DNA of 64,000 nt, from IMG/VR virus record IMGVR_UViG_3300027816_000052, positions 186,001 to 250,000 of that record; one strand, 5' to 3'. Each line of letters begins with the position of its first letter. The first letter of the stretch is position 1. The notes beneath the pieces were generated by a model. It saw only the letters and a program-made list of their open reading frames with translations. It made no database searches and was not told where the DNA came from. This document shows, piece after piece, positions 1,784-60,507 of this stretch. A program made the translations under genes and the position numbers.

Positions 1784-1807
1784 TTATTTATGTTTAAAGA
1801 ATAGAAT

Positions 1808-3658: not shown

Positions 3659-3681
3659 ATGGTTAAAAAAACTAAAATATA

Positions 3682-6528: not shown

Positions 6529-8430
6529 ATGGGATTAATAGGTAGCGGAACAACTAATGAATGTAAAGTGGTAACAATTTTTCCACTGGGTGTTGAGTGT
6601 AATACAACAAATCCGTCAACATCACTTGCACTTGACGGTATCGCGTCATTAATAATTACAGGGGGAACAGCACCATATAATATACAATGGAGTAATGGTG
6701 CAACAAGTCAAACTTTATATGGTCTTGGTGGTGGTGAATATACCGCAACCGTTACAGATTATTACGGTGATTTTACCTCAGTTACCACTTGTGTTTTAAT
6801 ACAACCAACAACAACCACAACAACATATACAACAACGACAACAACAATACCTTATACCTCAGGTGTTACTTTTTGTTTAAGTAGATGTAAAACTAATATC
6901 TGTGATAATTTTACATTCCAAGCCGGAAATATTATAAATGGATATAATTCTTGGACATCAAGCACATTAACAGTTTATTATGATATAATAACTAATAGAT
7001 GGATTTTTGATGGTTATACCGCACCATTAGGCTACAATGCTGGTATTACATATGCAAATGACCCACCAACGGCTAATCCACCATTATCTTGGTTGGTTGA
7101 AGGTTCAAATTATAGACCTGAGGTTTATGCTGTGGTGGGAAATTGCGGTTCTCAGACAGCAACATTTTCTAGGTCGATAACAAATTCAGCTTGTCAATCT
7201 TCAAAAGACGGATCAATAATTGTAACCCCTAATGGTGGTTCCGGTTCTTATTTATTTTCAAAAAATGGTGGATTAACCTATCAATCATCTCCTGTTTTTA
7301 GTAATTTAGATTCTGGGTCATATACAATAGTAATTAAAGATACTGTAACAAATTTAACAAAATCTGATGTTGTGGTTGTATCGAACACAACAAATACAAG
7401 AACTTTTAGTTTGAACTTCTCAACAACAAGTCCAACAACAGTATATACACCACCAACTAATGTTTATGATATAATTCAGCAATTCTCACAAACGAAAGAA
7501 ATTATACCATTTGTAATCACACCAAACCCAATATTACAAGTTGGTGAAACTTTAACTTTTGATTTTGACTTTAGAACTAATACTAGTTTTCAGTCTCCGG
7601 GTAATGCTGTATTTACAAATAACTTATTATTATATAAAAACGGTAATTTATTAACAGGTTTAACGTCTACAATAACTAATACCACCGTTGGTTCCGGCGT
7701 TTGTTCAGCAAATACACTAACATCTGTAACGTCTATAACACAATATAATTCTGTTTCATTAACATATGGTGATACATTAAGTGGTAGTGTATATTCAAAC
7801 ACATCATTATCAGCAACATCGTCTGTATTAGGTTGTACATCGTCAGCAAATAATCTTGTGTCATATGGAACTAAAAATTTAACAATCACACCACAAAAAT
7901 GTCGCTCAATTAGTTCCGGATTGGTAAAAAATACACAATTCACAAACAATTTAAATTATATTTTACCGCCATTAAATATATCATTTACAAACAAATGGTT
8001 AACAAATACCGAATCAGCACTTAGTGGATTTACATATGGCGGAAATGTAAATAACCCAACATCTCCGGGTACAACACCAAAAATATCATATAATTTTACA
8101 ACAGGTTGTTTAATACAAAATACTAGTTGCTTCCCATTAGCAAATACTGTAAATGGTGGACCATTAACCGGAGTTACCACAAATCAATTAACGGTACAAG
8201 CTGGAACAAGAGGGGGTATTATAAATTTATGGTTACAATTAGGTGGGCTTTTAAGTGGTGGTGCATGTGCAAAAATATTTGGAACATTAAAGGTTTCTAT
8301 AAATTCTGGCGCATATACTACTTTAACGACATTAAATGGTGGTTTAGGTACATGCTCAACAACATATTCATATGTTATTCCATTAAATGCAAATTCTATT
8401 GAATTTTTATGGGAACAAACGAGAATCTAA
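6529..8430 (+). CDS. SprB-repeat-containing probable virion/adhesion protein
   Basis: ITGGTAPYNIQWSNGATSQTLYGLGGGEYTATVTD and NGGSGSYLFS...FSNLDSGSYTIVIKD are SprB-type repeats. Confidence 0.7.
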   Translation: MGLIGSGTTNECKVVTIFPLGVECNTTNPSTSLALDGIASLIITGGTAPYNIQWSNGATSQTLYGLGGGEYTATVTDYYGDFTSVTTCVLIQPTTTTTTYTTTTTTIPYTSGVTFCLSRCKTNICDNFTFQAGNIINGYNSWTSSTLTVYYDIITNRWIFDGYTAPLGYNAGITYANDPPTANPPLSWLVEGSNYRPEVYAVVGNCGSQTATFSRSITNSACQSSKDGSIIVTPNGGSGSYLFSKNGGLTYQSSPVFSNLDSGSYTIVIKDTVTNLTKSDVVVVSNTTNTRTFSLNFSTTSPTTVYTPPTNVYDIIQQFSQTKEIIPFVITPNPILQVGETLTFDFDFRTNTSFQSPGNAVFTNNLLLYKNGNLLTGLTSTITNTTVGSGVCSANTLTSVTSITQYNSVSLTYGDTLSGSVYSNTSLSATSSVLGCTSSANNLVSYGTKNLTITPQKCRSISSGLVKNTQFTNNLNYILPPLNISFTNKWLTNTESALSGFTYGGNVNNPTSPGTTPKISYNFTTGCLIQNTSCFPLANTVNGGPLTGVTTNQLTVQAGTRGGIINLWLQLGGLLSGGACAKIFGTLKVSINSGAYTTLTTLNGGLGTCSTTYSYVIPLNANSIEFLWEQTRI

Positions 8431-22551: not shown

Positions 22552-23352
22552 ATGAAAGACAAAAACACTACAGTTTCAATTAACCAAGAAGAAATTTATG
22601 GGTACTTAAAAGATATCCGTAAATTTAAAGTAATGACTCCTGAAAGGGAAAGAGAGCTTTCTGAAGTAATGAATAGCGGCATCGCAAATAAAGAGCAGAT
22701 AGATGATATTAAAAAAGAACTCCTTGAGGGTAACTTACGGTTTGTCATTAGTGTGGCAAAACAATATCAAAATCAAGGACTGGAATTGGGTGACTTAATT
22801 GCTGAAGGTAATTTGGGTTTGATTAAGGCAATTGATAGCTTTGATTGGACCAAAAAATTAAGATTTATTTCATATGCTGTTTGGTGGATTAGACAATCAG
22901 TAATTCAATCATTAAATGAAAAATCTAGATCAATTAGAATTCCTGTAAACGTAATTCAAGATTTACAAAAGGAAAAGAAAAAGTCTGAAAAAACTGGTGA
23001 TAACCTGTCAGATAGATTTTCTTCATTACCGTCAATTGTTAAATTAGATATGAATATTAATGAAGATGGTGATTCATTGATTGATGTAATTGTAAACCCA
23101 AATGCGTTATCACCCGACTCAGGGTTCTCAACTCAGGACACATTAAAACAAAAATTATTTGATGTTATGAATATTCTTGATGAGAGGGAGAAAGTTATTA
23201 TTGATGATTATTTTGGTTTAAGTGGATCAACAAGAACACTTGAGGAAATTGGAAATGATTTTAATCTTACCAAAGAACGTATTCGTCAAATAAAAGAAAG
23301 AGCATTGAGAAAGCTTAGAAACCAATCATCAGAGTTATTTGAATATATGTGA
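22552..23352 (+). CDS. rpoD: Sigma-70 factor of the Bacteroidota primary-sigma type (no region 1.1)
   Basis: YLKDI, NLRFVISVAKQYQNQG, EGNLGLIKA, FISYAVWWIRQS and TLEEIG...LTKERIRQIKERALRKLR. Confidence 0.92.
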   Translation: MKDKNTTVSINQEEIYGYLKDIRKFKVMTPERERELSEVMNSGIANKEQIDDIKKELLEGNLRFVISVAKQYQNQGLELGDLIAEGNLGLIKAIDSFDWTKKLRFISYAVWWIRQSVIQSLNEKSRSIRIPVNVIQDLQKEKKKSEKTGDNLSDRFSSLPSIVKLDMNINEDGDSLIDVIVNPNALSPDSGFSTQDTLKQKLFDVMNILDEREKVIIDDYFGLSGSTRTLEEIGNDFNLTKERIRQIKERALRKLRNQSSELFEYM

Positions 23353-49972: not shown

Positions 49973-50236
49973 ATGAGTACTGAAATGAGAAAACTCATAA
50001 ATGAGTTTAATAACATTAACGAATCAAGTTTAAATAGAATATATAGTCATATTCAAAAATATGAATGCGCAATTATAACAGCGTTTAAAGGTAAGTTAAC
50101 TAACTGTAGAACCGAAAATGATAATGAAAAAAGAATATATATTAGACAGAACAAGGATAGAAATAAACTTTTAAAATCAGCTTTATTATTTTTTGGATAT
50201 CAAATTACAAAAGTAAAAGGTACTTATGTTGAATAA
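49973..50236 (+). pseudogene. Probably 3'-truncated late gene (ESSLNRIY...CAIITAF family)
   Basis: The frame stops at KGTYVE* exactly where a half attC-like site begins. Confidence 0.5.
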
Positions 50237-50274
50237 ACCACAAACCCGCCACTTGCATATACACGCTGTTATAA
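50232..50274 (+). repeat. Truncated attC-like site (right arm only)
   Basis: ATAAACCACAAACC...TATACACGCTGTTATAA resembles the right half of the 54977-55069 site. Confidence 0.65.
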
Positions 50275-50364
50275 GCAGGTGCGGTATTATAGCACAGAAC
50301 TTGATTTGAAAGACGAAACCTTTTTCTTTTCTTTTTGTGTGGTGGGAAAATAAAATTTAAAATA

Positions 50365-52338
50365 ATGAATAAAGTATTATTACCAAAAGAAGAAATTACA
50401 CAGAAGTTAGATAGAGATAAACTTACTTTATTGAACGCTTCTATCAAAGATTATGTGAACAACTTGTATGAAAATTCAAATGATGAATACATTATACAAG
50501 ATGGTGAACCATACGCCAATGGAGAATTACATTTGGGACATTTTTTAAACAAAACCTTGAAAGATTTTGTTGTAAAATATTACTTAACAAAAGGTAAGAA
50601 AGTTAGGGTTTCATTTGGTTGGGACTGTCATGGTTTACCCATTGAAAATAAAGCAAAAGAAATGAGTGGTGATTTAATTCAAAATGCTAAATTAGTCGCA
50701 ACCAAATATTGTGATATTCAAAATAAAACTCTTGAACTTTTCGGGATTTATCCAACTGAAGGTAGGTTTAAAACTATGGATATTGATTTTATAGAAAGAG
50801 AATTATATATATACCACCAACTACTAAATGCGGGTCTAATTCTTAAAAAGAATAAGCCTACTTGGTACTCACCAACATTAAAAACAGTATTGGCTAACTC
50901 AGAAATTGAATATAAAAAAATAGAAGATGAATCTTTGTATTTTCTATTCAACTCTGATAGTTTTAAATTACTTGTTTGGACAACAACAGAATGGACTGTA
51001 AACGGAAATCAGGCAGTATGTTTAAGTAATAATATAAAATATGTTAAAACTGTTGACAATATTATTTGTAGTGAAAGTTTTGCTATTGAAAATAATTTAG
51101 ATTATGATTTGTTTGATGTGAGTAATATTAAGTCATATCATAACCACAATGGAGATTTATGTCCAATTATTTATGATGACTACGTTTCAGATGATAAAAC
51201 AGGTATAGTACATCTTTGCGGTGGACACGGTGATGAAGATTATCGAATTTTAATGGATAATAACATAACCCCCAAAAATGTGTGCGATAAAATCGGCTTA
51301 TTAAAACACATAGAAGATTTTAAAATTGATGAAAAGTTTGTATATAAACGTGAAATTTACACACACGATTATCCAATTGATTGGCGTGAAGGGAATAAGG
51401 TGTATAAAGTATTAACGGAACAAACGTATCTTGATTTTGATTTAAACAAAATAAAGACTTGTTTAAAAGAAATAAAGTTATCATCAAAAGACAGAAATCG
51501 TTTATCAACGACAATATTTTCACGCAAAGATTGGTGTATTTCAAGACAAAGAAAATGGGGTGTTAAAATACCTAATAGTAATGATATATTGGATGTTTGG
51601 TTTGATAGTGGTTCTACATTTATGATGTATGATAAACCTGCCGATATATACATTGAAGGTTCAGACCAACACAGAGGGTGGTTTCAAAGTTCGATTATAT
51701 TAGCATCAATGATTGGTCGAGTACCAACAAAAAGAATAATAACACACGGATTTATTGTTGATAACACATTAGAAAAACTATCAAAATCAAAAGGTAATGG
51801 CGGAAGTTTGGAAAAGCTGTATGAAACATATAACCCTGATGTATTAAGACTATGGGTTTTACTGTCAGATTTTAAAAACGATATTGTCTTTTCGGAAGAT
51901 TCATTAAAAAACTCTGGTAAACAATATTTTAAAATAAGAAACTTTCTCCGTTATTTATTTAATAATCTATATATATATGATTATGATGAAACAAAAGTTG
52001 ATGAAAATATTTTTTTTAAAGTAAAAGAGTTGGAAAATAAATTTGATTTACTTGTCAATGAATTTGATTTGAATAAAGCAGTAAGGGGTTTTGTTGAATT
52101 TATAAACTATTATTCATCTTTGTTGACGGAGGATATTAAAAATGAATTTTATGAATCTGACACAAATTCCAATATGAGAATTAAATATGAAACAGAGTTT
52201 TACTATGTTTTAAAACACTTAAATAAACTACTTTTTTCGATTTTACCATTTCTTTCTATGGAAATAAAAAAAGCGTGGGAAGAAAAAAGAAAAGAAAAAG
52301 ATTTACATGTAGGGACTATATTTGGAAACGAGATGTAG
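50365..52338 (+). CDS. ileS: Minimal isoleucyl-tRNA synthetase (cassette 1)
   Basis: DGEPYANGELHLGH, GWDCHGLPIE, WTTTEWT, DWCISRQR, DVWFDSG, EGSDQHRGWFQS and KLSKS. Likely start at 50365 (657 aa). Confidence 0.9.
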   Translation: MNKVLLPKEEITQKLDRDKLTLLNASIKDYVNNLYENSNDEYIIQDGEPYANGELHLGHFLNKTLKDFVVKYYLTKGKKVRVSFGWDCHGLPIENKAKEMSGDLIQNAKLVATKYCDIQNKTLELFGIYPTEGRFKTMDIDFIERELYIYHQLLNAGLILKKNKPTWYSPTLKTVLANSEIEYKKIEDESLYFLFNSDSFKLLVWTTTEWTVNGNQAVCLSNNIKYVKTVDNIICSESFAIENNLDYDLFDVSNIKSYHNHNGDLCPIIYDDYVSDDKTGIVHLCGGHGDEDYRILMDNNITPKNVCDKIGLLKHIEDFKIDEKFVYKREIYTHDYPIDWREGNKVYKVLTEQTYLDFDLNKIKTCLKEIKLSSKDRNRLSTTIFSRKDWCISRQRKWGVKIPNSNDILDVWFDSGSTFMMYDKPADIYIEGSDQHRGWFQSSIILASMIGRVPTKRIITHGFIVDNTLEKLSKSKGNGGSLEKLYETYNPDVLRLWVLLSDFKNDIVFSEDSLKNSGKQYFKIRNFLRYLFNNLYIYDYDETKVDENIFFKVKELENKFDLLVNEFDLNKAVRGFVEFINYYSSLLTEDIKNEFYESDTNSNMRIKYETEFYYVLKHLNKLLFSILPFLSMEIKKAWEEKRKEKDLHVGTIFGNEM

Positions 52339-52345
52339 CACTTGC

Positions 52346-52465
52346 TTATAACGGTTGCAAATATAAAACGTTTTAAACTAAACTTAAATTGAAAAACAGT
52401 ATATAAATATAAACCAACAATAAATTTGGAACGCTGAAATAAATGTTTTATATTTGTTGTTATAA
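52346..52465 (+). repeat. attC-like hairpin (120 bp)
   Basis: TTATAAC-GGTTG-CAAATATAAAAC...GTTTTATATTTG-TT-GTTATAA. Confidence 0.85.
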
Positions 52466-52485
52466 ACACGTTAAATTATTTTATT

Positions 52486-52764
52486 ATGAAAACATATAAT
52501 GTAAAGTATGATGTTGGACAAGAAGTATATATACTTTTATCCAAAAAAATATTTAAAAGTAAAATTGAAAAGATTAGAATTGTTCATGGGGTACCTTATA
52601 TCAAAGGCGAAACAATGGAACAAATGGATGGAATTGAAATTGATTACTTGGTTGTAGTTAATGAACAATTCTATCCTTCAGGTGGACATTTATCTAGTTA
52701 TGATTGGTATAAACAGGATGATATTTTTTTGGATAAAGATGAACTGTTGCGGAAAATAATTTAA
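52486..52764 (+). CDS. Cassette 2 hypothetical protein
   Basis: ORF between the 52459 GTT and the 52775 AAC. Confidence 0.7.
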   Translation: MKTYNVKYDVGQEVYILLSKKIFKSKIEKIRIVHGVPYIKGETMEQMDGIEIDYLVVVNEQFYPSGGHLSSYDWYKQDDIFLDKDELLRKII

Positions 52765-52768
52765 TTGT

Positions 52769-52822
52769 TTATAACGTCTGATGATAAACAATCGTTTTAA
52801 TGTGTTTTATTTGCTGTTATAA
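52769..52822 (+). repeat. attC-like hairpin (54 bp)
   Basis: TTATAAC-GTCTGATGATAAACAATCG...GTTATAA; near-copy of 57404-57457. Confidence 0.8.
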
Positions 52823-52846
52823 GTATGTAATTTACAATTTATACCT

Positions 52847-53092
52847 ATGAAAAAAACGAAAAGAAAAATACATATTGGAAATGACCTATGGTTTTATTGG
52901 GTTGGTTCTGGTAGATGGGGTGAGGTAACTCATGTAACGATATGTTCACCAGATGAACAATATTATAAAATAGATGCAAGTGATGTTGCAAGTAGTGAAA
53001 TGTATGTTGGTGCGGAAGGGTCATTTCCAACACAAATATTACCGTCAAAAGTTAAAGAATATATTGAAAATAAAATAATAAATAAATTTTAA
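52847..53092 (+). CDS. Cassette 3 hypothetical protein
   Basis: ORF between hairpins. Confidence 0.7.
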   Translation: MKKTKRKIHIGNDLWFYWVGSGRWGEVTHVTICSPDEQYYKIDASDVASSEMYVGAEGSFPTQILPSKVKEYIENKIINKF

Positions 53093-53100
53093 ATTATTAC

Positions 53101-53195
53101 TTATAACGGTTGGGTGTATGAGAAGGTTTGCTTAGATGAACTTTCAAATTAACCACTGAACTTTATAGCAAACTTTCTTATACACCTTGTTATGT
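53101..53195 (+). repeat. attC-like hairpin (95 bp)
   Basis: GGTGTATGAGAAGGTTTGCT / AGCAAACTTTCTTATACACC stem. Confidence 0.88.
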
Positions 53196-53263
53196 GTAGG
53201 TGTGGTTAATTAAGGTAGAATGTTAAATAGTAGAAATGAACAAAAATTTTAAAAGAAAAATAT

Positions 53264-53674
53264 ATGAATTATAAACAAAAAATTACAACTATCAATTATT
53301 TTGAAAAGGTGGTTAAAATTTCTCTAACAAGAGAAGAGTGGAATTCATCTGGAACTTGGGTAGAGTCAATGATGAAAAAAGGTTGTGAAAGACTGAGTAA
53401 GGATTGGTTTGAAGATTTACATCACTTAGTTATGCGACCAATAAGTGACGAAATAAACTTTTCTGGTAAAAACTATACTTATGATGTGGATATAACATTT
53501 GATATACCAAGAGAATTACTGAGAATGTTTGTATATTCAATCGGTCAAATTGCTTATGATTTTGATGTTAAAGGTATAACTTCGGTTACTGCTCAAAATA
53601 TAGTGGGAAAAATAAACAAACAATTAAAAGAACAACTACCAAATGATGATAAATGGTTTCATTATGGATTTTGA
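53264..53674 (+). CDS. Cassette 4 hypothetical protein
   Basis: ORF between hairpins. Confidence 0.7.
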   Translation: MNYKQKITTINYFEKVVKISLTREEWNSSGTWVESMMKKGCERLSKDWFEDLHHLVMRPISDEINFSGKNYTYDVDITFDIPRELLRMFVYSIGQIAYDFDVKGITSVTAQNIVGKINKQLKEQLPNDDKWFHYGF

Positions 53675-53732
53675 TTTTTCTTTTAAAATTTTCAACCGAA
53701 ATGTTGATTAGAACGATGAACGGAACGCTTAC

Positions 53733-54208
53733 ACATAACGTATATCGGCTAAACGCAGTATTTAAAAACTTTTGCGAGGGAAATAATTAATCAATTAAAT
53801 AATAATAATTAAAAACAAAAAGTAAAATGGAAATCAAAACAAAATTTGACGTAAACAATTTGGTGAAAAGAAAATTCGACACCAATTCAAAGAACCAGAT
53901 GAGTGCTTTGGAAGTAATGGAAGTGATTGCACAAACTTGCTATGCAGGAACGCAGGTATTTTATTTGTGCAAACATGTAATTGCTCAAAAGGAATTTGTA
54001 GAAAAGTATTCTGAAAAAGGAGAATTTACTTGGGTGATTGCTCACAGTATTTCACAAGAAGAAAATCAGGCAGGATGGAGAAAATACCGTGAAGATGAAT
54101 TGATAGAAGCACCAAAAGAAGTGATTGACATTATACTTGGTAATTCTTAATTGTTCAATTGTGCGGTGGGAAAGTTTTTAAATATTGTCGTTTTAGCCGT
54201 TGTTATGC
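53733..54208 (+). repeat. attC-like hairpin with a gene in its loop (476 bp)
   Basis: CGGCTAAACGCAGTATTTAAAAACTTT pairs with AAAGTTTTTAAATATTGTCGTTTTAGCCG. Confidence 0.8.
53827..54150 (+). CDS. Hypothetical protein inside the attC-like loop
   Basis: 107-aa ORF with an A-rich leader. Confidence 0.7.
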   Translation: MEIKTKFDVNNLVKRKFDTNSKNQMSALEVMEVIAQTCYAGTQVFYLCKHVIAQKEFVEKYSEKGEFTWVIAHSISQEENQAGWRKYREDELIEAPKEVIDIILGNS

Positions 54209-54273
54209 GAAGGTGTGGCAACTCCAAAATTTCAAATTATAGACAAAACTTTCTTGCCACACTTTTGCATAAC
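54202..54273 (+). mobile_element. Empty cassette body (cassette 5, 72 bp)
   Basis: GTTATGCGAAGGTGTGGCAA...TTGCCACACTTTTGCATAAC with no ORF between. Confidence 0.8.
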
Positions 54274-54351
54274 GGTTGTAAATATGAGAAGTAAATTTTA
54301 CCTATAAAAATTAGATAAATCAAAATTTATTTCTTATATTTGTTGTTATAA
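54267..54351 (+). repeat. attC-like hairpin (85 bp)
   Basis: AAATATGAGAAGTAAATTTT / AAAATTTATTTCTTATATTT stem. Confidence 0.85.
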
Positions 54352-54382
54352 GTATGTAAAACAAACTAAATAATAATTAAAT

Positions 54383-54613
54383 ATGAAAATTGAAGGTCAA
54401 ATTACGCTAGATGGTATATTATATACACTGTTTATTTTATTCTGTTTATTTTTAACAATAGGTAGTTCTATTAGTGGGTGGTGGTATTTATCACACTTTG
54501 GATTCAGTGTAAAACAATTTTTGGTAAATATTTTAGTTTCGTCTTCAACTTTATTTATGATCTGGATGATTTTCACTAAAATATTTATTATAAAAATAAA
54601 CAGAATAAAGTAG
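54383..54613 (+). CDS. Cassette 6 small membrane protein (2 TM)
   Basis: Two hydrophobic helices. Confidence 0.7.
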   Translation: MKIEGQITLDGILYTLFILFCLFLTIGSSISGWWYLSHFGFSVKQFLVNILVSSSTLFMIWMIFTKIFIIKINRIK

Positions 54614-54626
54614 TTTGTTTTATTAC

Positions 54627-54757
54627 TTATAACGGTTGAGTATAACCGAAGGTGGGGATTAGAAGTGCCGAACCCTGACTTACCTACAAAAGTAAATTAG
54701 AAGCACAATATCTGAATGTTGGAACTACACCCCACTTTTGGTTATACTTTGTTAGGT
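54627..54757 (+). repeat. attC-like hairpin (131 bp)
   Basis: AGTATAACCGAAGGTGGGG / CCCCACTTTTGGTTATACT stem. Confidence 0.88.
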
Positions 54758-54777
54758 GTATGTAAATTTTACGGATT

Positions 54778-54966
54778 ATGAAAGATATACAACTGTTAAT
54801 TGATATGAAAGTTTCTTTAGGTAGGGAAACATTATTATTTCAGATACTTGGTAAGTATGGTGATAAAATACCAATGGAACTTCAAGAAGAACTACGAAAA
54901 TTGGCAGAAGAAGAAAGAAACTTTGGTGAAATGAAGAAACGAACTTTGAAGGGTGTGTTGGAGTAA
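54778..54966 (+). CDS. Cassette 7 hypothetical protein
   Basis: 62-aa ORF between hairpins. Confidence 0.65.
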   Translation: MKDIQLLIDMKVSLGRETLLFQILGKYGDKIPMELQEELRKLAEEERNFGEMKKRTLKGVLE

Positions 54967-54976
54967 AATTTATTAC

Positions 54977-55069
54977 ACCTAACGGTTGGGTGTATGAAAC
55001 GTAGCCACGCACAATACTTAATATAAACCACAGACCTTAATTGGCTATGTTTTATACACGATGTTAGCA
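54977..55069 (+). repeat. attC-like hairpin (93 bp)
   Basis: GTGTATGAAACGTAGCCA / TGGCTATGTTTTATACAC stem. Confidence 0.88.
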
Positions 55070-55175
55070 GTAGTACGGATTTAAACTACAAATGCTCATT
55101 CGGAGAACTGAACCTTTTTCTTTTCTTTTTTGTGGGTTGGACAAAATAAATTTGAAAAATTTAAAAATAAATAAT

Positions 55176-55409
55176 ATGAAATTAGAAACAATTGTAAAAG
55201 TTACACCAGATGGTGGAGTTGAAATTCCTTCTGATATGAAAGTTGGAACTGGATTGATGAATATGGTAAAAGAATTACGTGATAATGAATGGAGAACATT
55301 TGAACATCACGATAATTGGATTAAAAACGAACATTATCCAAATCCAACATTTGAACAACAATTTGATACAGGTAATGCTTATAAAGAAATGTTAAAAACT
55401 AAAATTTAA
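55176..55409 (+). CDS. Cassette 8 ORF a
   Basis: Likely start at 55176; the track's start at 55092 lies in the cassette flank. Confidence 0.6.
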   Translation: MKLETIVKVTPDGGVEIPSDMKVGTGLMNMVKELRDNEWRTFEHHDNWIKNEHYPNPTFEQQFDTGNAYKEMLKTKI

Positions 55410-55413
55410 AACT

Positions 55414-56013
55414 ATGATGAAAATTGAAGCAAAAAAAGACGGTAAAGGAAACATTGTAATATCGGAAGATTCCTTTGAAATGATACTGGCTTGTTTAGAT
55501 AATCAAAAATTTGTTGGTGAACAGCCACAAAATGGTGATTCGCTTTCGGTAGGCGAAGACAACTATTGGAAAGGACAAGAAGATATTCAAAACACTATTG
55601 ACCATTATAATAGAGAATGTAGAAAAATATTACATCAAAAATATGTTTTAAGAACAGAATCTGATGGTTATTTTCTTGCTAAAAAATATGAACATCAAAC
55701 AGAAGATACTGAATGGACTGGTGAAGATGTTGGATTAGTGTATGAACTATTCAAAGATACAAGAATAATTTATAATGAAACAAGAGATTTATTACCATTA
55801 GATGGTAGTGAAGAAATTAAGGAAGGAAGTACTCCAATTGGTAAAACAAAAGATGGGTGGATTGCAGTTGAACAAGAATCAAGACCTTGGTTAATTGAAA
55901 GAGCATTGGGATATGATGGTGATTATTTAACAATTTCTGAAGATGGCAGTAAGAATAGACCTTGGAAACAAGATGAAATTCGAAAAATTATAAACATATT
56001 TAATAATAAATAA
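55414..56013 (+). CDS. Cassette 8 ORF b
   Basis: 199-aa ORF. Confidence 0.7.
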   Translation: MMKIEAKKDGKGNIVISEDSFEMILACLDNQKFVGEQPQNGDSLSVGEDNYWKGQEDIQNTIDHYNRECRKILHQKYVLRTESDGYFLAKKYEHQTEDTEWTGEDVGLVYELFKDTRIIYNETRDLLPLDGSEEIKEGSTPIGKTKDGWIAVEQESRPWLIERALGYDGDYLTISEDGSKNRPWKQDEIRKIINIFNNK

Positions 56014-56014
56014 A

Positions 56015-56422
56015 ATGGGAATATTTGATTGTTTAATAGATAAAGACAATGGAAAACCAAAATCTGATATGGAATATATTTACAGATTAGATATGGTTTG
56101 GATACCTAACAAACTTGAAAGTAAACCAATTAAAATTGGAACGATAATGAATAATGTTATTCAACGAGATAATGGCAGTTATGAATTTACTTGTAAAGAA
56201 ACTGGTGAAAGATTACAAGCAACTTATTCTTGGGCTTTGGCTGAAAACACACCAGAAAATGTTGAAAGAATAAAAATATATGATGATGAATATTTAAAAT
56301 TCAAAGAATACGAAAGAAAAATAAATTCTTTGAGAAATAATATTATTACTCTTAAAGAGCGTGGAGAAAAAAGAAAAGAAAAAGATATTGCAGATGAAAC
56401 TCAAATCGGAGAACAAATGTAG
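56015..56422 (+). CDS. Cassette 8 ORF c
   Basis: 135 aa; the C-terminus reads through the cassette 3' flank. Confidence 0.7.
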   Translation: MGIFDCLIDKDNGKPKSDMEYIYRLDMVWIPNKLESKPIKIGTIMNNVIQRDNGSYEFTCKETGERLQATYSWALAENTPENVERIKIYDDEYLKFKEYERKINSLRNNIITLKERGEKRKEKDIADETQIGEQM

Positions 56423-56428
56423 TATTAC

Positions 56429-56487
56429 ACATAACGGTTCGGCGGGTTGCCGTTGTGCATTCAATAACGGCAACCCGACTGTTATGC
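56429..56487 (+). repeat. attC-like hairpin (59 bp)
   Basis: CGGGTTGCCGTT / AACGGCAACCCG perfect stem. Confidence 0.88.
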
Positions 56488-56527
56488 GGGGTCATTCTTT
56501 TTCACTCGGTAAAAAGCAAAAGGTACA

Positions 56528-56830
56528 ATGGCAAAAAGGAAGTTAGGCCCATCGAGCGGCAAGTGCTCCAAGTGCGGAGGTCACATCAGCATCAATCCAC
56601 CAAGACCGTGCCGCCGCTGCTCAGGCGAAAAGCCTCAGGCGAGCTCGGAAAAGAAAGAGCGCGTGTTCACCGAGAGCGAGGTGAAGGCGATGGTGCGAGA
56701 GATTCTCGCAGAACAGGAACGACTGCATATAAGCGATGGATCCGGAGGACACGATATTGTGTGGGCGGTCGGGATCGGAGAGGTCGAGGCGGTGTTTAAA
56801 GCGCACGGCATTGTTCTCGATCCCGCATAA
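56528..56830 (+). CDS. Cassette 9 GC-rich zinc-ribbon protein
   Basis: CSKC...CRRC; the stop codon TAA lies inside the GCATAAC core. Confidence 0.7.
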   Translation: MAKRKLGPSSGKCSKCGGHISINPPRPCRRCSGEKPQASSEKKERVFTESEVKAMVREILAEQERLHISDGSGGHDIVWAVGIGEVEAVFKAHGIVLDPA

Positions 56831-56954
56831 CGGTTGACGGTATGAAAAGTTGGGGATTAAAAGATATAAACTTTCGCACCGATACAATGATAATTAATAG
56901 TACAAACCTTCGGGAACGCACACACGCCCCAATTTTTTATACCGTGTGTTATGC
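56825..56954 (+). repeat. attC-like hairpin (130 bp)
   Basis: ACGGTATGAAAAGTTGGGG / CCCCAATTTTTTATACCGT stem. Confidence 0.88.
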
Positions 56955-56975
56955 CCCGTTTTTATCCAATTTTTT

Positions 56976-57398
56976 ATGTTACAAGACGAATTAGCATTAC
57001 AATATAAATACAAAAAACTTCCATCAGAATTATCTGACAAGGTAAGAAACCAATATTTGTCTGAAATACCAAAATGTTTGAATATCAATGGTGATTCTGA
57101 ATTTGAGTTAAAAACAGCAAACGGTACAATAATTTCAAAAGGATATGAAAGAATTGTAATTGGAGATTATGGAGCGTTTATTGAATTTAACAGAAATCAA
57201 GTTATTGACGAAAATATTTGTATTCAAAAGGGGCAAGAATATAGAATTAACGATGAAAAATATAGTAAGAATGTGAAATATTTTTGGTTGACTGCAAAAG
57301 ATTCATCGTGTATAAAGATATATTTACAACAGAAAACGGTATCATACGCAGATTATAAACCAAATATGTATTACGTGTCTCCATTTGAGGTTTTTTAA
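56976..57398 (+). CDS. Cassette 10 hypothetical protein
   Basis: GYERIVIGDYGAFIEF; likely start at 56976. Confidence 0.7.
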   Translation: MLQDELALQYKYKKLPSELSDKVRNQYLSEIPKCLNINGDSEFELKTANGTIISKGYERIVIGDYGAFIEFNRNQVIDENICIQKGQEYRINDEKYSKNVKYFWLTAKDSSCIKIYLQQKTVSYADYKPNMYYVSPFEVF

Positions 57399-57403
57399 AT
57401 GGG

Positions 57404-57457
57404 GAATAACGTCCGATGATAAACAATCGTTTTAATGTTGTTTATCATTTGTTATGT
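57404..57457 (+). repeat. attC-like hairpin (54 bp)
   Basis: ATGATAAACA / TGTTTATCAT stem. Confidence 0.85.
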
Positions 57458-57536
57458 GTAGGTGTGGATTATTAAGGTGGAATGTTTAATCGGAGAACTG
57501 AACAAAAATTTTAAAAGAAAAATTAATATATAGATT

Positions 57537-57761
57537 ATGGGAAACATAGTTAAAAAATTTGAAAACTTTAAAGATGGGTTATACGTCACATGTAAAAACG
57601 CACCAGAAGATAATTACCAACTTCATAATAAAAAGGATTATTTGGTTATTAAATATGATAACCAACCGTATGGTGTTGGACGAGTAACTATATTTAACCC
57701 TTCAAGTAGAAAGGAAGAAACATATCCTAAAACTATGTTTAGTGAACCATTTAACAAATAA
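57537..57761 (+). CDS. Cassette 11 hypothetical protein
   Basis: 74-aa ORF. Confidence 0.65.
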   Translation: MGNIVKKFENFKDGLYVTCKNAPEDNYQLHNKKDYLVIKYDNQPYGVGRVTIFNPSSRKEETYPKTMFSEPFNK

Positions 57762-57819
57762 TTTTTCTTTTAAAATTTTAAACATAGATGTTGATTAGAA
57801 CGATGGGTGGAACACTTAC

Positions 57820-57952
57820 ACATAACGTTTCGCAGCTTGGCGAGGTGCGGGATTTACAGCACTAAAGACGATTAGAATTACAAATTTTTAAATAAAAAAC
57901 AATATGTCAAACGAAGTACAAAACCCCGCATCTTGCCAAACTGCTGTTATAT
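57820..57952 (+). repeat. attC-like hairpin (133 bp) containing the start codon of the next gene
   Basis: GCAGCTTGGCGAGGTGCGGG / CCCGCATCTTGCCAAACTGC stem; ATG at 57904. Confidence 0.88.
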
Positions 57953-58185
57953 GCCGCCTTTTTGATTTGGGAAGGAAAGGGTTAACATGGGATTGGTCAA
58001 AATTGGAACTGAAAAAACAATACTTTATCAGTCGTGAAGATGTTTTGAATATGAATATGCTTTGGCAACTTGCACAAGGTGGTATAACTGAACAAGCACA
58101 ATCTTTGAATGCAGAAGTATTGATTTGGGAAGATGTCATAAAAAACGGATGGTACTTGTTGCTGAGACCGCAAGGTGGCATATAA
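57904..58185 (+). CDS. Cassette 12 protein starting within the upstream hairpin
   Basis: The first ~15 codons (MSNEVQNPASCQTAV) are hairpin sequence. Confidence 0.65.
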   Translation: MSNEVQNPASCQTAVICRLFDLGRKGLTWDWSKLELKKQYFISREDVLNMNMLWQLAQGGITEQAQSLNAEVLIWEDVIKNGWYLLLRPQGGI

Positions 58186-58313
58186 CGGTTTGCGTATTGC
58201 TGACGTTGCCAATTTGAAACACAAATGTTGAATTAAAAACAAAAAAATAAATATGAAAATCAGAGTTGAAGTTAAAGACGAAGCTGGCAATGTTCAGCAA
58301 TACGTTGTTAGGC
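58180..58313 (+). repeat. attC-like hairpin (134 bp) containing the start codon of the next gene
   Basis: CGTATTGCTGACGTTGCCA / TGGCAATGTTCAGCAATACG stem; ATG at 58253. Confidence 0.88.
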
Positions 58314-58471
58314 GCAGTTACTTGGTCAAATTTGTTGACCCGAAGAAAGAGTATCCTGTTACCTACACAATTAAACACGATGGCACAAGAGTAAATGAAC
58401 CTGCAATGCTCAAAGGCGAAGATTTAACCGAAAATCAAATTGCACAACTTTTCTCGAAGGGTTTGTTGTAA
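58253..58471 (+). CDS. Cassette 13 protein starting within the upstream hairpin
   Basis: The first ~19 codons (MKIRVEVKDEAGNVQQYVV) are hairpin sequence. Confidence 0.65.
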   Translation: MKIRVEVKDEAGNVQQYVVRRSYLVKFVDPKKEYPVTYTIKHDGTRVNEPAMLKGEDLTENQIAQLFSKGLL

Positions 58472-58475
58472 TTGC

Positions 58476-58570
58476 GCCTAACGATTGGGTGTATATGTAG
58501 TTTTTTATTTGGAAATGTCAAAACTTATTCGTACCTTTGTAAAAAAAATTACATATACACCTTGTTATGT
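58476..58570 (+). repeat. attC-like hairpin (95 bp) with a promoter in its loop
   Basis: GGTGTATATGTAGTTTTTT / AAAAAATTACATATACACC stem. Confidence 0.88.
58508..58539 (+). promoter_or_regulatory. Bacteroidota housekeeping-type promoter inside the attC-like loop
   Basis: TTTG-N20-TACCTTTG. Confidence 0.75.
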
Positions 58571-58601
58571 ATAGTTTATTCACAAATTAAAATAAAAGTT
58601 T

Positions 58602-58808
58602 ATGAAACAACCAAAAATTAAAATAACCGACATTCACGGTAAAGACTGGGGTATTAAAAAAGTAAAAACACTTCATTGGAATTTGGACGGAAAATTAAAC
58701 ACAATTCAAGTTGATTTTTCTGGAACTATGGATATGTATGATTTAGATGATGAAGGCGTTTTTACTAATCCACATGGTAATATGAAAGGCGTTATCATTT
58801 GGGAATAA
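58602..58808 (+). CDS. Cassette 14 hypothetical protein
   Basis: 68-aa ORF. Confidence 0.65.
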   Translation: MKQPKIKITDIHGKDWGIKKVKTLHWNLDGKLNTIQVDFSGTMDMYDLDDEGVFTNPHGNMKGVIIWE

Positions 58809-58813
58809 ATTAT

Positions 58814-58866
58814 ACATAACTAGTATATATAAGTAAGTATAATCTAACCACTTAAAAATAAAGGAC
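58814..58866 (+). other. Candidate attI-like half-site between the last cassette and the recombinase
   Basis: ACATAAC is followed by TAGTATATATAAGTAAG rather than by a hairpin; no partner GTT arm. Confidence 0.5.
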
Positions 58867-59667
58867 TTGAATAATAAAATTATTAAGATTTGTGAAGAAA
58901 AGTTTATATATTTAAACTATTCACCAAGAACAAAAGATAATTATCTTTCACATATAAAAAATTTCTTAAATCACATTGGTAGTAAACAAGTAATACATTG
59001 TAATGCTCAAGATTTTCAATCCTATTTAGATAATTATAAATTCACTTCAACAGCACAACAAAACCAAATCATTAACGCAATAAGATTTCTCTACAAATTT
59101 GGTCTTAATAAAAAATATGATAAAATATCGTTTAAAAGACCTAAATCTGAGAAGAAACTACCAAAAGTAATTGATTCAAATTCAATCATTGATAAATTAA
59201 ATAAGATTGATAATCTCAAACACAAAGCAATTCTCACCTTAACTTTTTCAGTTGGTCTACGAGTCTCAGAAATAATTAATCTTAAAATAGAGGATATTGA
59301 TTCCAAGCGAATGTTAATCCACATTAAGAACGCAAAAGGAAGAAAAGATAGAGTTGTTCCATTATCTCAAAATGTATTAAGACTATTAAGAACTTATTAT
59401 AAAAATTATATCCCAAAGGAATATCTCTTCAATGGACAAAACAGTACTAAATATTCAATAGGTAGTTGTCAGAAAATATACAAAAAATATATTGAATCTG
59501 ATGGACATATACACACACTTAGACACAGTTTTGCAACATCCTTATTAGAAAATGGAACAGATTTAAGAATTATTCAAAAAATTCTTGGTCATTCAAATGT
59601 TAAAACCACAGAAATATACACACACGTTTCAAATCAAATTTTGAACAAAATTAATTTGCCAGTTTGA
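58867..59667 (+). CDS. Compact tyrosine recombinase (integron-integrase-like, lacking the IntI insertion)
   Basis: SAM-like N-terminus YSPRTKDNY, GLRVSE (R), AKGRKDR (K), HTLRHSFAT (HxxR), LGH and TEIYTH (Y). TTG start. Confidence 0.92.
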   Translation: MNNKIIKICEEKFIYLNYSPRTKDNYLSHIKNFLNHIGSKQVIHCNAQDFQSYLDNYKFTSTAQQNQIINAIRFLYKFGLNKKYDKISFKRPKSEKKLPKVIDSNSIIDKLNKIDNLKHKAILTLTFSVGLRVSEIINLKIEDIDSKRMLIHIKNAKGRKDRVVPLSQNVLRLLRTYYKNYIPKEYLFNGQNSTKYSIGSCQKIYKKYIESDGHIHTLRHSFATSLLENGTDLRIIQKILGHSNVKTTEIYTHVSNQILNKINLPV

Positions 59668-60478: not shown

Positions 60479-60507
60479 TTATATTTATATATAAAACACT
60501 TCAAAAA

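Follow-up and report, generated by a model that had tools for sequence, protein, structure and literature searches.

Reuse of cassette shells around unrelated genes in a phage gene array

Two unrelated genes of a large phage are enclosed by the same flanks of about 70 bases, and these flanks are best explained as the self-pairing ends of mobile gene cassettes in an integron-like array served by a Xer-type recombinase, with related phages reusing them around at least 32 unrelated cargo families. The window analysed, i.e., the whole 64-kb stretch of phage DNA, contains such an array immediately upstream of a 266-aa tyrosine recombinase gene, and the same layout recurs in about 80 related phage contigs (loci designated below by L and a number). 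The shared flanks reported by the first-pass annotation are real. Its interpretation, that genes are loaded into pre-existing shells, is only partly supported, and the context of the flanks differs from the one it assumed.

The 5′ flanks (53187-53261 and 57449-57523) are 91% identical over 75 nt. The 3′ flanks (53674-53750 and 57761-57837) are 84% identical over 77 nt, with 58/66 matching positions inside the module proper (53674-53739 vs. 57761-57826). Each of the two modules carries a perfect inner inverted repeat, of 19 nt (53243-53261 / 53674-53692) and 21 nt (57505-57525 / 57759-57779), as well as a 10-nt terminal inverted repeat, GTTATGTGTA / TACACATAAC. The second shell claimed for modules 1 and 8 (shell B here, as opposed to shell A of modules 4 and 11) is also present: the inner repeat of module 8 is perfect over 18 nt, and 52283-52303 of module 1 pairs with 55111-55131 of module 8. 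The spacing noted for module 1, exactly 37 nt between terminal and inner blocks at both ends, was confirmed, while both spacers in module 8 are 51 nt. One correction is required, as the “cassettes” of the first-pass annotation are ORF modules running from a GTTA box to a TAAC box, whereas the mobile unit itself starts one hairpin further upstream.

The enclosed ORFs, of 136 and 74 aa, give no BLASTP alignment. Remote homology between them, which would have reduced the observation to plain duplication and divergence and had been specified in advance as the refuting outcome, was examined by comparing profiles built from their respective homologues; the hhalign probability was 0.15%, so the paired ORFs are not remote homologues. 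Homologues of both cargos occur in other phages as ordinary, shell-less genes, and the cassette junctions are ORF-precise, falling within 2-13 nt of the ATG and exactly at the stop codon. The material therefore does bear on how cassettes are made.

Table 1. Features of the cassette array and its recombinase gene (window coordinates)
Position	Strand	Feature	Supporting observations
50226..58834	+	Whole cassette array, from a truncated hairpin remnant to the attI-like junction	All 11 hairpins detected in the window by a TAAC...GTTA inverted-repeat search lie at 52349-58567; two more were seen by eye (hairpin b, 52772-52819; hairpin d, 53736-54205)
50226..50271	+	3′ half of a hairpin at the distal end of the array; 5′ half missing	Homologous to the 3′ half of the hairpin upstream of the shell-A module in L090
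50268..52352	+	ORF module 1 in shell B; cargo is a shortened IleS-like tRNA ligase	Terminal IR 50268-50282 / 52338-52352; inner IR 50320-50336 / 52284-52300; the 3′ arm is translated (protein ends ..EEKRKEKD..)
53104..53192	+	Hairpin c (GGGTGTAT.. / ..TATACACC family), attC-like hairpin of the cassette carrying shell-A cargo 4	This hairpin family precedes shell A in about 40 of 57 modules
53189..53263	+	Shell A, 5′ half (short form)	R-box extension GTTATGTGTAGGTGTGG, spacer, inner arm 53243-53261; alignment of 60 modules
53264..53674	+	Cargo 4, 136 aa, function unknown	24 homologues; homologues at 54-71% identity sit in ordinary operons without shell or hairpins
53674..53739	+	Shell A, 3′ half	Inner arm 53674-53692, spacer containing ATGTTGATTAGAACGATG, R box ending in TAAC at 53736-53739; the last A of the stop codon is the first base of the arm
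53736..54205	+	Hairpin d, with a whole ORF (53827-54150, 107 aa) in its loop	Arms of about 45 nt in the fold
54202..54273	+	Empty 72-nt ORF module of another type	20-nt terminal inverted repeat, 90% complementary
55063..56435	+	ORF module 8 in shell B, with three ORFs	Inner IR 55114-55131 / 56367-56384; the same 5′ and 3′ shell flanks a DNA methyltransferase in Flavobacterium phage vB_FspS_mymlan6-1
56432..56831	+	GC-rich cassette: hairpin i plus ORF module 9	GC 0.58 (hairpin) and 0.55 (module) against 0.28-0.39 for the neighbours
57407..57454	+	Hairpin k, attC-like hairpin of the cassette carrying shell-A cargo 11	Detected by the inverted-repeat search
57451..57536	+	Shell A, 5′ half of the second copy	Inner arm 57505-57525
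57537..57761	+	Cargo 11, 74 aa, function unknown	One homologue sits in an array with only a minimal shell (L225); two sit in ordinary operons (L227, L229)
57759..57826	+	Shell A, 3′ half of the second copy	Ends in TAAC at 57823-57826
58818..58834	+	attI-like junction	Last TAAC box followed by TAGTATATATAAG
58867..59667	+	Xer-type tyrosine recombinase, 266 aa	Pfam Phage_integrase plus SAM_4; best NCBIfam model is XerA, scoring below its cut-off; lacks about 48 residues present in VchIntIA

The association of the array with the recombinase is consistent across loci. No hairpin was detected by the search elsewhere in the 64 kb, and in the approximately 80 related loci hairpins lie upstream of the recombinase on the same strand, with only 11 lying downstream, 6 of them in L064. 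A junction of the form TAAC|TAT(T/A)ATATATA is conserved 50-60 nt upstream of the recombinase gene in 66 distinct loci, although the conserved sequence may simply be the recombinase promoter. It should also be noted that the search requires TAAC and GTTA, so the invariance of these boxes is partly built in.

Several comparisons define the cassette as running from one TAAC box to the next, with an attC-like hairpin first and the ORF module after it. When the same ORF module was found in a different context, it kept only its upstream hairpin in 11 pairs and only its downstream hairpin in 0 pairs, although in 14 of 25 comparisons both neighbouring hairpins differed, so that the hairpin and the ORF module are not strictly one unit. 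In 188 of 588 hairpins an ORF starts inside the hairpin and reads through the GTTA box, against 36 ORFs that cross a TAAC box, and the GC-rich hairpin of the window goes with the GC-rich ORF that follows it. Most directly, a 960-nt unit, 99.9% identical, lies distal in L005 and next to the recombinase in L018, where it is joined exactly at the attI-like junction, with homology starting at one TAAC and ending at the next.

The two ends of an ORF module are complementary to each other. The ends of the same module pair for a median of 6 nt beyond the 4-nt box, and for 10 nt or more in 43% of modules, whereas the flanks of the same hairpin in array context pair for a median of 1 nt. The reconstituted circle junction folds in silico into a single hairpin closed by the inner arms, at -39.8 and -34.4 kcal/mol (z -7.6 and -8.3). 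Two compensatory arm variants were seen; the inner arms are so conserved in sequence that covariation support is thin. About 40 nt on each side between the terminal and inner repeats are conserved but do not pair, which the folding model does not explain, and G-rich boxes on the same strand at both cargo borders are likewise unexplained. The 5′ and 3′ end types are tightly coupled.

The shell is a discrete, reusable unit with sharp boundaries. The same GTTATGTG...CACATAAC module sits between different neighbours in L090, L091 and L097. Shell A encloses 60 distinct modules with 32 cargo families unrelated by BLASTP. Other shell types show the same pattern, and shell B has the same architecture and occurs in a cultured Flavobacterium phage. 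Most shell-A modules carry a promoter-like box and an N-terminal leader: MKDLKQFIKTTIREFLNE or MSKEMREQINKVKNW.. is fused in frame to unrelated cargos and resembles the capsid-targeting sequence of T4 (IPII/IPIII MKTYQEFIAE; PMC9026906, PMC3012670), although the resemblance covers only 4 identities in 10 residues.

Taken together, these results favour, with moderate confidence, a phage-borne, integron-like cassette array served by the adjacent Xer-type recombinase. In this view, each cassette comprises an attC-like hairpin (TAAC, asymmetric bubble GGTT/TT, stem-loop, GTTA) followed by the ORF module, and new cassettes enter at the TAAC|TATTATATATA junction next to the recombinase gene. The shell is the pair of non-coding ends of the ORF module, and in single-stranded DNA, above all in the excised circle, its two halves would zip up beneath the hairpin into one imperfect palindrome of 190-230 nt. 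The crossover point (TAA|C) would then lie in the middle of this palindrome and not at its base as in integron attC sites, so that the crossover splits the site and its outer part appears on both sides of the cargo, as the phage counterpart of the near-identical attC repeats that accompany unrelated ORFs in chromosomal integrons. The shell also appears to carry expression signals: its usual long form has a G-rich box, a TATTTATATATA promoter-like box and an 18-20-residue leader ending L-N-E, and most shell-A cargos are probably packaged, injected proteins. The two copies in the window are a short form, in which an ORF taken from the ordinary phage gene pool sits exactly between the inner arms. 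The anatomy, the distribution, the cassette boundaries, the movement of a cassette, the unrelatedness of cargos and the existence of shell-less homologues are demonstrated by the sequences, whereas single-strand folding, the role of the arms, the promoter and leader functions and the manner of cargo exchange are inferred, with no experiment or read-level evidence showing circles or single-strand recombination. The exchange most likely happens by recombination within the conserved inner shell rather than by filling an empty shell.

The literal form of the original proposal, in which empty shells pre-exist and genes are inserted at the apex between the inner arms, appears unlikely but has some support. 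In four unrelated cargos (the two in the window, the MGQHTW.. family and L084) the stop codon overlaps the first base of the 3′ arm, giving a 3′ UTR of exactly 65 nt, and the ATG lies 2-13 nt after the 5′ arm; moreover, one empty module of another type exists in the window, many short empty modules occur in relatives, and hairpin d holds a whole ORF in its loop. However, no empty shell A was found among about 140 stretches carrying its 3′ signature, so the loading of pre-existing shells is not demonstrated and replacement of cargo inside occupied shells is equally possible. The homologue of cargo 11 in L225 has only the outer 17 nt and 14 nt of the shell, so shell layers can be gained or lost around a resident cargo. 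The first-pass annotation had suggested looking for a reverse transcriptase or other accessory gene elsewhere in the genome; among the 20 larger ORFs of the window that were scanned, ten of them also with Pfam, neither an insertion enzyme nor a reverse transcriptase was found. Much of the shell is likely expression and targeting signal rather than an empty container. A purely regulatory shell, with promoter, UTRs and 5′-3′ UTR pairing acting at the RNA level cargos shuffled by homologous recombination between conserved flanks and the recombinase playing no part in the conservation of the shell, is a somewhat better but still doubtful alternative. The long form contains the TATTTATATATA box 11-20 nt before the ATG, a box that also precedes an ordinary gene at 60482, the leader is conserved, the arms abut the start and stop codons, and precedents exist in PeSL cassettes and the internal-protein loci of T4-type phages (PMC2839356, PMC3012670). 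On the other hand, the shell ends coincide exactly with the TAAC and GTTA boxes at which cassettes move, the end types are coupled through complementarity, the hairpins are very diverse in sequence (294 clusters) and thus a poor substrate for homologous exchange, and a sigma-70 promoter and terminator scan showed no enrichment.

The remaining alternatives are less probable still. A canonical bacterial integron fragment (a CALIN) picked up by the phage, with the neighbouring recombinase being merely the lysogeny integrase, would be compatible with the resemblance of the hairpins to attC sites, their boxes being close to RYYYAAC / GTTRRRY, with CALINs reported in virulent phages, including a Polaribacter phage (PMC9892861), and with the recombinase-less array of Flavobacterium phage mymlan6-1. 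Yet the array-junction-recombinase layout is conserved across recombinases of 55-100% identity, a cassette is inserted exactly at that junction, the hairpin-before-ORF polarity is the opposite of bacterial cassettes, and cargo 4, cargo 11 and the leader-bearing cargos are phage genes. A MITE-like or transposon-like element carrying passenger genes, which happened to insert in the array, is very unlikely: terminal and subterminal inverted repeats, variable passengers and a wide distribution would fit, but there are no target-site duplications, the ends are the same boxes shared by every module of the array, and, where enough flanking sequence is available, 46 of 57 modules are preceded and 40 of 52 are followed directly by a hairpin. 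All complete copies examined lie in such arrays. Plain duplication of one cassette followed by divergence of its ORF, suggested only by the identity of the flanks, can be all but dismissed, given the absence of homology, the difference in protein length and the fact that each cargo has its own family with members outside any shell.

Among described systems, the array is closest to integrons (Cury et al. 2016, bioRxiv 10.1101/030866), especially sedentary chromosomal integrons with near-identical attC repeats around unrelated ORFs, such as the Vibrio cholerae repeats. In both, small and mostly single-ORF cassettes are separated by imperfect hairpins with TAAC/GTTA-type boxes, a tyrosine recombinase gene sits next to an insertion site at which new cassettes enter, the two ends of a cassette are complementary, and one repeat family accompanies many unrelated genes. 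The phage array is not a canonical integron, however: its recombinase is Xer-like and lacks the IntI-specific insertion, the hairpin lies 5′ of its ORF on the coding strand with ORFs often starting inside it, ORFs point towards the insertion site and the recombinase, the complementary region extends 55-75 nt beyond the crossover on both sides, and the host is a phage. The proposed action of a Xer-type enzyme on a hairpin folded from one DNA strand, with exchange of a single strand pair, recalls CTX phage integration by XerCD, although CTX integrates a whole phage genome at dif using host enzymes, whereas here a phage enzyme is proposed to shuffle gene cassettes.

PeSL regulatory cassettes of T4-type phages (Arbiol et al. 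2010, PMC2839356) similarly involve small ORFs of unknown function in hyperplastic phage regions, flanked by conserved stem-loop and promoter motifs that mediate modular shuffling and can give mini-circles. PeSLs, however, are direct repeats that recombine by homology without a dedicated recombinase, while the flanks described here are inverted repeats bounded by site-specific boxes. T4 internal proteins (PMC3012670, PMC9026906) are, like the shell-A cargos, highly diverse proteins sharing only a short N-terminal leader, and an I/L-x-E motif of the kind cut by the prohead protease is present. The leader described here is longer, its packaging and cleavage are untested, the genes lie in site-specific cassettes, and the two shell-A cargos of the window lack it. 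Clusters of attC sites without integrase in virulent phages (Qi et al. 2023, PMC9892861) share the attC-like sites between small ORFs in lytic phages, including a flavobacterial (Polaribacter) phage, and DNA methyltransferase cargos. That study treats the sites as bacterial integron components that IntI1 can recognise and reports no dedicated phage recombinase, attI-like junction or shells. The array of Flavobacterium phage mymlan6-1, with no nearby recombinase, carries four methyltransferase genes.

The repeated flanks reported in the first-pass annotation are real. The 5' and 3' flanks of the two cassettes concerned, cassettes 4 and 11, match closely over their length (see table), with 58 of 66 positions identical by count in the part of the 3' flank that lies inside the module proper. 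Each unit also has a 10-nt terminal inverted repeat (GTTATGTGTA / TACACATAAC) and a perfect inner inverted repeat of 19-21 nt. The second shell described in the annotation (shell B, as opposed to shell A around cassettes 4 and 11) holds as well, as does the claimed geometry of module 1, with spacers of exactly 37 nt on both sides. The enclosed ORFs, of 136 and 74 aa, give no BLASTP alignment. Remote homology between them had been specified beforehand as the result that would reduce the pattern to plain duplication and divergence. Profiles built from their homologues were compared, and the hhalign probability was 0.15%, so the proposal withstands its own refutation criterion. The observation is confirmed and extended, whereas the interpretation attached to it, that genes are loaded into pre-existing shells, is only partly right.

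Coordinates of the cassette array, its repeats and the other features considered
Record	Position	Feature	Size or identity
Window	6529-8430	Protein with SprB repeats	633 aa
Window	22552-23352	Sigma factor
Window	50226-58834	Stretch in which ORFs are separated by imperfect hairpins
Window	50268-52352	ORF module 1 with shell B, carrying a shortened IleS-like class I tRNA ligase	667 aa
Window	53187-53261 and 57449-57523	5' flanks of cassettes 4 and 11	75 nt, 91% identical
Window	53674-53750 and 57761-57837	3' flanks of cassettes 4 and 11	77 nt, 84% identical
Window	53736-54273	Hairpin d and the ORF-less module that follows it	72 nt (module)
Window	56432-56831	GC-rich cassette, hairpin i plus an ORF	100 aa (ORF)
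Window	57904-58185	ORF starting in the loop of the preceding hairpin
Window	58253-58471	ORF starting in the loop of the preceding hairpin
Window	58867-59667	Tyrosine recombinase	266 aa
Window	60482-60493	Motif TATTTATATATA before an ordinary gene (probable start at about 60508)
L005 (related phage locus)	583-1542	Cassette, distal in the array	960 nt
L018 (close relative of L005)	2634-3593	The same cassette, next to the recombinase	960 nt, 99.9% identical
L018	1-114	Retained end of the distal copy
L064 (related phage locus)	7.9-10.5 kb downstream of the recombinase	Second cluster of hairpins	6 hairpins
Flavobacterium phage vB_FspS_mymlan6-1	1-8722	Hairpin array with DNA methyltransferase genes	four methyltransferase genes

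The window has about 28-30% G+C, carries nearly all of its ORFs on one strand, and encodes phage-type RNA ligases, an SbcC-like nuclease, a primase and a sigma factor. Over the 20.8 kb around the recombinase gene it is identical, at least by recombinase sequence and hairpin positions, to IMG/VR contigs of up to 256 kb. Within the array the ORFs are separated by imperfect hairpins of the form TAAC-bubble-stem-loop-stem-GTTA. Thirteen are counted in the window, and a simple finder for such hairpins detects 11 in the 64 kb, all of them in this stretch. Across 174 loci 719 hairpins were collected, with boxes [A/C]TAAC / GTTA[T/G] and a bubble that is asymmetric in a constant way, GGTT or GTTT following TAAC and only TT preceding GTTA. 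The hairpins have the features of integron attC sites, namely imperfect pairing, boxes of the RYYYAAC / GTTRRRY kind, an unpaired spacer and a variable loop, although the third box position is A in 68% of hairpins, where the integron consensus has a pyrimidine. As to the extrahelical bases that mark the recombinogenic bottom strand of attC sites, a consistent strand asymmetry of 2-3 extra bases on the TAAC side was seen. It does not have the canonical form, and no attC covariance model was applied; whether the asymmetry is equivalent is undecided. A search against Rfam gave no family at gathering threshold anywhere in the window.

Directly downstream of the array, on the same strand, lies a tyrosine recombinase with the catalytic domain and the SAM-like N-terminal domain. 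It scores best against an archaeal XerA model, below that model's cut-off, and its best PDB relative is XerA, 4a8e. Against the integron integrase VchIntIA (2a3v), the protein spans 34 residues (175-208) where IntI has 82 (178-259), and the integron integrase model TIGR02249 scores 161 bits, in two pieces, against a cut-off of 265. It therefore lacks the additional domain near the catalytic region that defines integron integrases. The layout is nevertheless a family trait: the recombinase has 80 relatives, at 55-100% identity, on viral contigs of up to 362 kb, and wherever upstream sequence is available these carry 1-18 hairpins upstream on the same strand. Only 11 hairpins lie downstream, 6 of them in L064, the only locus with a second cluster on that side. 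In 66 distinct loci the last TAAC box is followed by a nearly invariant TAT(T/A)ATATATA, 50-60 nt before the gene. This junction (TAAC|TATTATATATA) corresponds to an attI site in that it lies next to the recombinase gene and a cassette is joined exactly there in L018, although the conserved sequence may mainly be the promoter of the recombinase. No other neighbouring gene is conserved, the 99-aa ORF downstream of the recombinase recurring in only 8 of 80 loci searched, 75 of which hold 1.5 kb or more of downstream sequence.

The cassettes were first read according to the integron convention, as an ORF followed by its attC with the crossover at G|TTA, but linkage, ORF starts, base composition and a rearrangement contradict this. 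When the same ORF module occurs in different contexts, only the upstream hairpin is kept in 11 pairs and only the downstream one in 0 pairs, while both differ in 14 pairs, a group not accounted for. In 188 of 588 distinct hairpins, about a third, an ORF starts inside the hairpin and reads through the GTTA box, whereas only 36 ORFs run past a TAAC box. Two of the window's own ORFs start in the loop of the preceding hairpin in this way, so that its 3' arm and GTTA box are coding. The one GC-rich ORF module (0.55), which encodes a protein with a CxxC..CxxC motif, is preceded by a GC-rich hairpin (0.58) and followed by a normal one (0.39). In a phage of about 28% G+C this cassette was probably acquired from a very different gene pool that uses the same type of site. 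Finally, a nearly identical unit is distal in the array of L005, where it is followed by another hairpin, and next to the recombinase in L018, where it is followed by the conserved junction sequence. Homology starts at the TAAC of its hairpin and ends at the next TAAC, and L018 also retains the end of the distal copy. The cassette is present once in one phage and twice in its close relative, and the extra copy lies at the recombinase-proximal junction, which looks like a recent copy-and-insert event. A cassette is therefore a hairpin plus the following ORF module, with the crossover in or next to TAAC and insertion beside the recombinase gene. In topology this is an integron, but the ORFs point towards the insertion site and the recombinase.

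With these boundaries, both halves of a shell belong to one cassette, and in an excised circle the 3' half would be joined to the hairpin, which in turn runs into the 5' half. Folding that junction as DNA gives a single long hairpin closed by the inner arms, with the TAAC/GTTA stem in its middle and the ordinary hairpin at its tip, at -39.8 kcal/mol for cassette 4 and -34.4 kcal/mol for cassette 11 (z about -8 against shuffles). This is a general property of the arrays: the two ends of the same ORF module pair for a median of 6 nt beyond the 4-nt box, and for 10 nt or more in 43% of modules, whereas the flanks of one hairpin in array context pair for a median of 1 nt. Short ORF-less modules are plain hairpins in the "inside-out" orientation. 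Hairpin d, with arms of about 45 nt, holds a complete 107-aa ORF in its loop and is followed by an ORF-less module, so a gene can sit in either kind of palindrome. The types of 5' and 3' ends are tightly coupled; for example, 36 of 44 shell-A 5' ends go with the shell-A 3' end. The shell is accordingly read as the outer part of the cassette's own recombination structure, appearing on both sides of the cargo because the crossover lies mid-palindrome. While the pairing and the coupling of the ends are observed in the sequences, single-strand folding and the role of the arms are inferences from them, and the conserved but unpaired spacers of roughly 40 nt, which carry direct GAAC motifs in both halves, are not accounted for.

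A search of metagenomes for the shells, one of the checks put forward with the original observation, shows how widely they are reused. An 18-mer from the 3' half of shell A occurs in 19 viral stretches and in at least 120 metagenomic stretches. A scan of bacterial genomes gave 8 hits, of which 4 are chance 18-mers and 4 are true hits on MAG contigs, two of them binned as Crocinitomicaceae and Cytophagales, so host assignment on this basis is weak. From these stretches 60 distinct complete shell-A modules of 376-1160 nt were recovered, holding 32 cargo families with no BLASTP relation once the leader is removed. Identical modules sit between different neighbours, with the sequences diverging exactly at GTTATGTG and CACATAAC, and about 40 of 57 modules are preceded by one hairpin family (GGGTGTAT.. 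/ ..TATACACC), while the downstream hairpins are diverse. Other shell types behave the same way, one having 19 modules with 16 different interiors. Shell B is also widespread and has the same architecture with arms of opposite polarity. In module 1 the 3' arm of shell B is translated: the last ~17 residues of the IleS-like ligase, which scores 385 bits with TIGR00392 against a cut-off of 621, are encoded by the shell's 3' arm and spacer, and the third ORF of module 8 ends with a similar shell-encoded tail, both ending ..EKRKEKD.., a feature for which no explanation is offered.

The alignment of the 60 shell-A modules shows that most are of a long form. After the 5' arm come a G-rich box (GAAGGGTGG), the motif TATTTATATATAAAAG, the ATG, and a conserved leader, either MKDLKQFIKTTIREFLNE or MSKEMREQINKVKNW..LNE, fused in frame to unrelated proteins; the stop codon abuts a second G-rich box in front of the 3' arm. 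The same-strand G-rich boxes at both cargo borders are unexplained, and when they were considered as a genome-wide regulatory motif, occurrences outside the array showed no clear pattern. The TATTTATATATA box lies 11-20 nt before start codons, both in the long-form shells of relatives and before an ordinary gene of the window, and the junction next to the recombinase has a similar sequence; it may be a promoter for the phage's own sigma factor. T4 IPII and IPIII begin MKTYQEFIAE, and in T4 this 10-residue capsid-targeting sequence is all that the otherwise diverse internal proteins share, the prohead protease cutting after the glutamate (PMC3012670, PMC9026906). The resemblance (M, K, a hydrophobic residue at position 4, F-I at 7-8, then I-R-E and L-N-E) suggests the hypothesis that long-form cargos are packaged and injected; it is one of sequence only, packaging and cleavage not having been assayed. 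Two cargo families are GNAT acetyltransferases above Pfam's cut-off and two have sub-threshold PARP-like matches. The window's two cassettes belong to a rarer short form, shared with two more unrelated cargos, in which the ATG lies 2-13 nt after the 5' arm and the last A of the stop codon is the first base of the 3' arm, giving a 3' UTR of exactly 65 nt, and in which G boxes, TATTTATATATA box and leader are absent. The N-terminus of cargo 4 (MNYKQKITTINYF) was suspected to be a decayed leader, but this was rejected because shell-less homologues start the same way, so that it is native to the family.

Cargo 4 has 24 homologues, and those at 54-71% identity lie in ordinary, tightly packed phage operons next to thymidylate synthase or RNA ligase genes, with no shell and no hairpins. 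Homologues of cargo 11 occur in three states: in ordinary operons (loci L227 and L229), in an array with only the outermost 17 and 14 nt of the shell (locus L225), and in the full short-form shell of the window. Shell and cargo are therefore separable, the shell comes in layers, and the capture is ORF-precise. What is missing is an empty shell A, none occurring among about 140 stretches searched, so replacement of one cargo by another inside an occupied shell is at least as likely as the loading of an empty one. A search for a reverse transcriptase or other accessory gene, likewise suggested at the outset, found no reverse transcriptase or other candidate enzyme among the 20 larger ORFs of the window scanned with PHROGs, ten of which were also scanned with Pfam; the rest of the 256-kb genome was not examined.

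In function and layout the array works like an integron, and the shared shells around unrelated genes parallel the near-identical attC repeats of chromosomal integrons, but it departs from the definition in lacking the IntI insertion and in the polarity of its cassettes, an integron cassette being an ORF followed by its attC and pointing away from attI. Clusters of attC sites without an integrase (CALINs) have been reported in virulent phages, including a Polaribacter phage with methyltransferase cassettes (PMC9892861). By eye the present array would qualify, since the neighbouring recombinase is not an IntI, although IntegronFinder and HattCI, by which such clusters are called, were not run on it. 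The work on virulent phages describes no dedicated phage recombinase, junction site or shells. PeSL cassettes of T4-type phages (PMC2839356) and the T4 internal-protein loci are the nearest phage precedents for conserved flanks around variable genes, but they rely on direct repeats and homologous exchange. The strong sigma-70-like early promoter and terminator stem-loop expected of PeSLs are not apparent here, as a promoter and terminator scan showed no enrichment (58 promoters found against 51 expected; 1 terminator against 2.9 expected), and the shell halves are inverted rather than direct repeats. A MITE or passenger-carrying transposon is not supported either: there are no target-site duplications, the modules abut hairpins directly, and no copy of the signature occurs elsewhere in the window.

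No description of this system was found in the literature searched, and the finding leads to what appears to be an undescribed phage form of the integron principle. It is possible, though somewhat less likely than not, that this is a phage-specific analogue of the integron built on a Xer-type recombinase rather than IntI, in which each cassette's recombination site is a roughly 200-nt composite palindrome split by the crossover so that it wraps the cargo. These wrappers would act as reusable adaptors, a few shell families, some with promoter and capsid-targeting leader, through which ordinary phage genes would be converted ORF-precisely into mobile cassettes, and cassette genesis could then be traced by comparing cassette copies with shell-less copies of the same gene. 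How integron cassettes are made is unsolved, and only finished products are usually seen; here, with the same gene found in three states and junctions at the start and stop codons, capture events can be reconstructed. At the level of the system, the array suggests that large phages, probably of Bacteroidota, run their own cassette platform with a recombinase that is not an IntI, and if so, integron-like gene shuffling arose more than once or predates IntI. As most shell-A cargos carry a leader like T4's capsid-targeting sequence and some are GNAT- or PARP-like enzymes, the platform may shuffle an arsenal of proteins injected with the phage DNA, which would make it a natural catalogue of candidate counter-defence proteins.

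Among cultured phages, the relatives of the recombinase carry no such array. Cellulophaga phage Ingeline has no hairpins, and Polaribacter phage Freya_10 has no TAAC/GTTA hairpins, although in the isolates Freya_1 to Freya_10 the position of a 36%-identical integrase shifts from 83 to 4180 as genome length grows from 44.0 to 48.9 kb; the records are circular, so the shift may only reflect where each record starts. Megablast of the array against GenBank phages found nothing, and only the more sensitive blastn found the shell-B copy in the cultured 38.5-kb Flavobacterium phage vB_FspS_mymlan6-1. There, one of the methyltransferase genes of the hairpin array sits inside a shell B nearly identical to that of window module 8, with no recombinase homologue in the 8.7-kb region fetched. 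This is the best host clue, together with the SprB-repeat protein in the window, SprB repeats being typical of Bacteroidota surface adhesins. In the same blastn search two very large uncultured phage genomes in GenBank, LR756500.1 (462 kb) and LR745206.1 (635 kb), shared short pieces with the array, which are probably shell or hairpin sequences.
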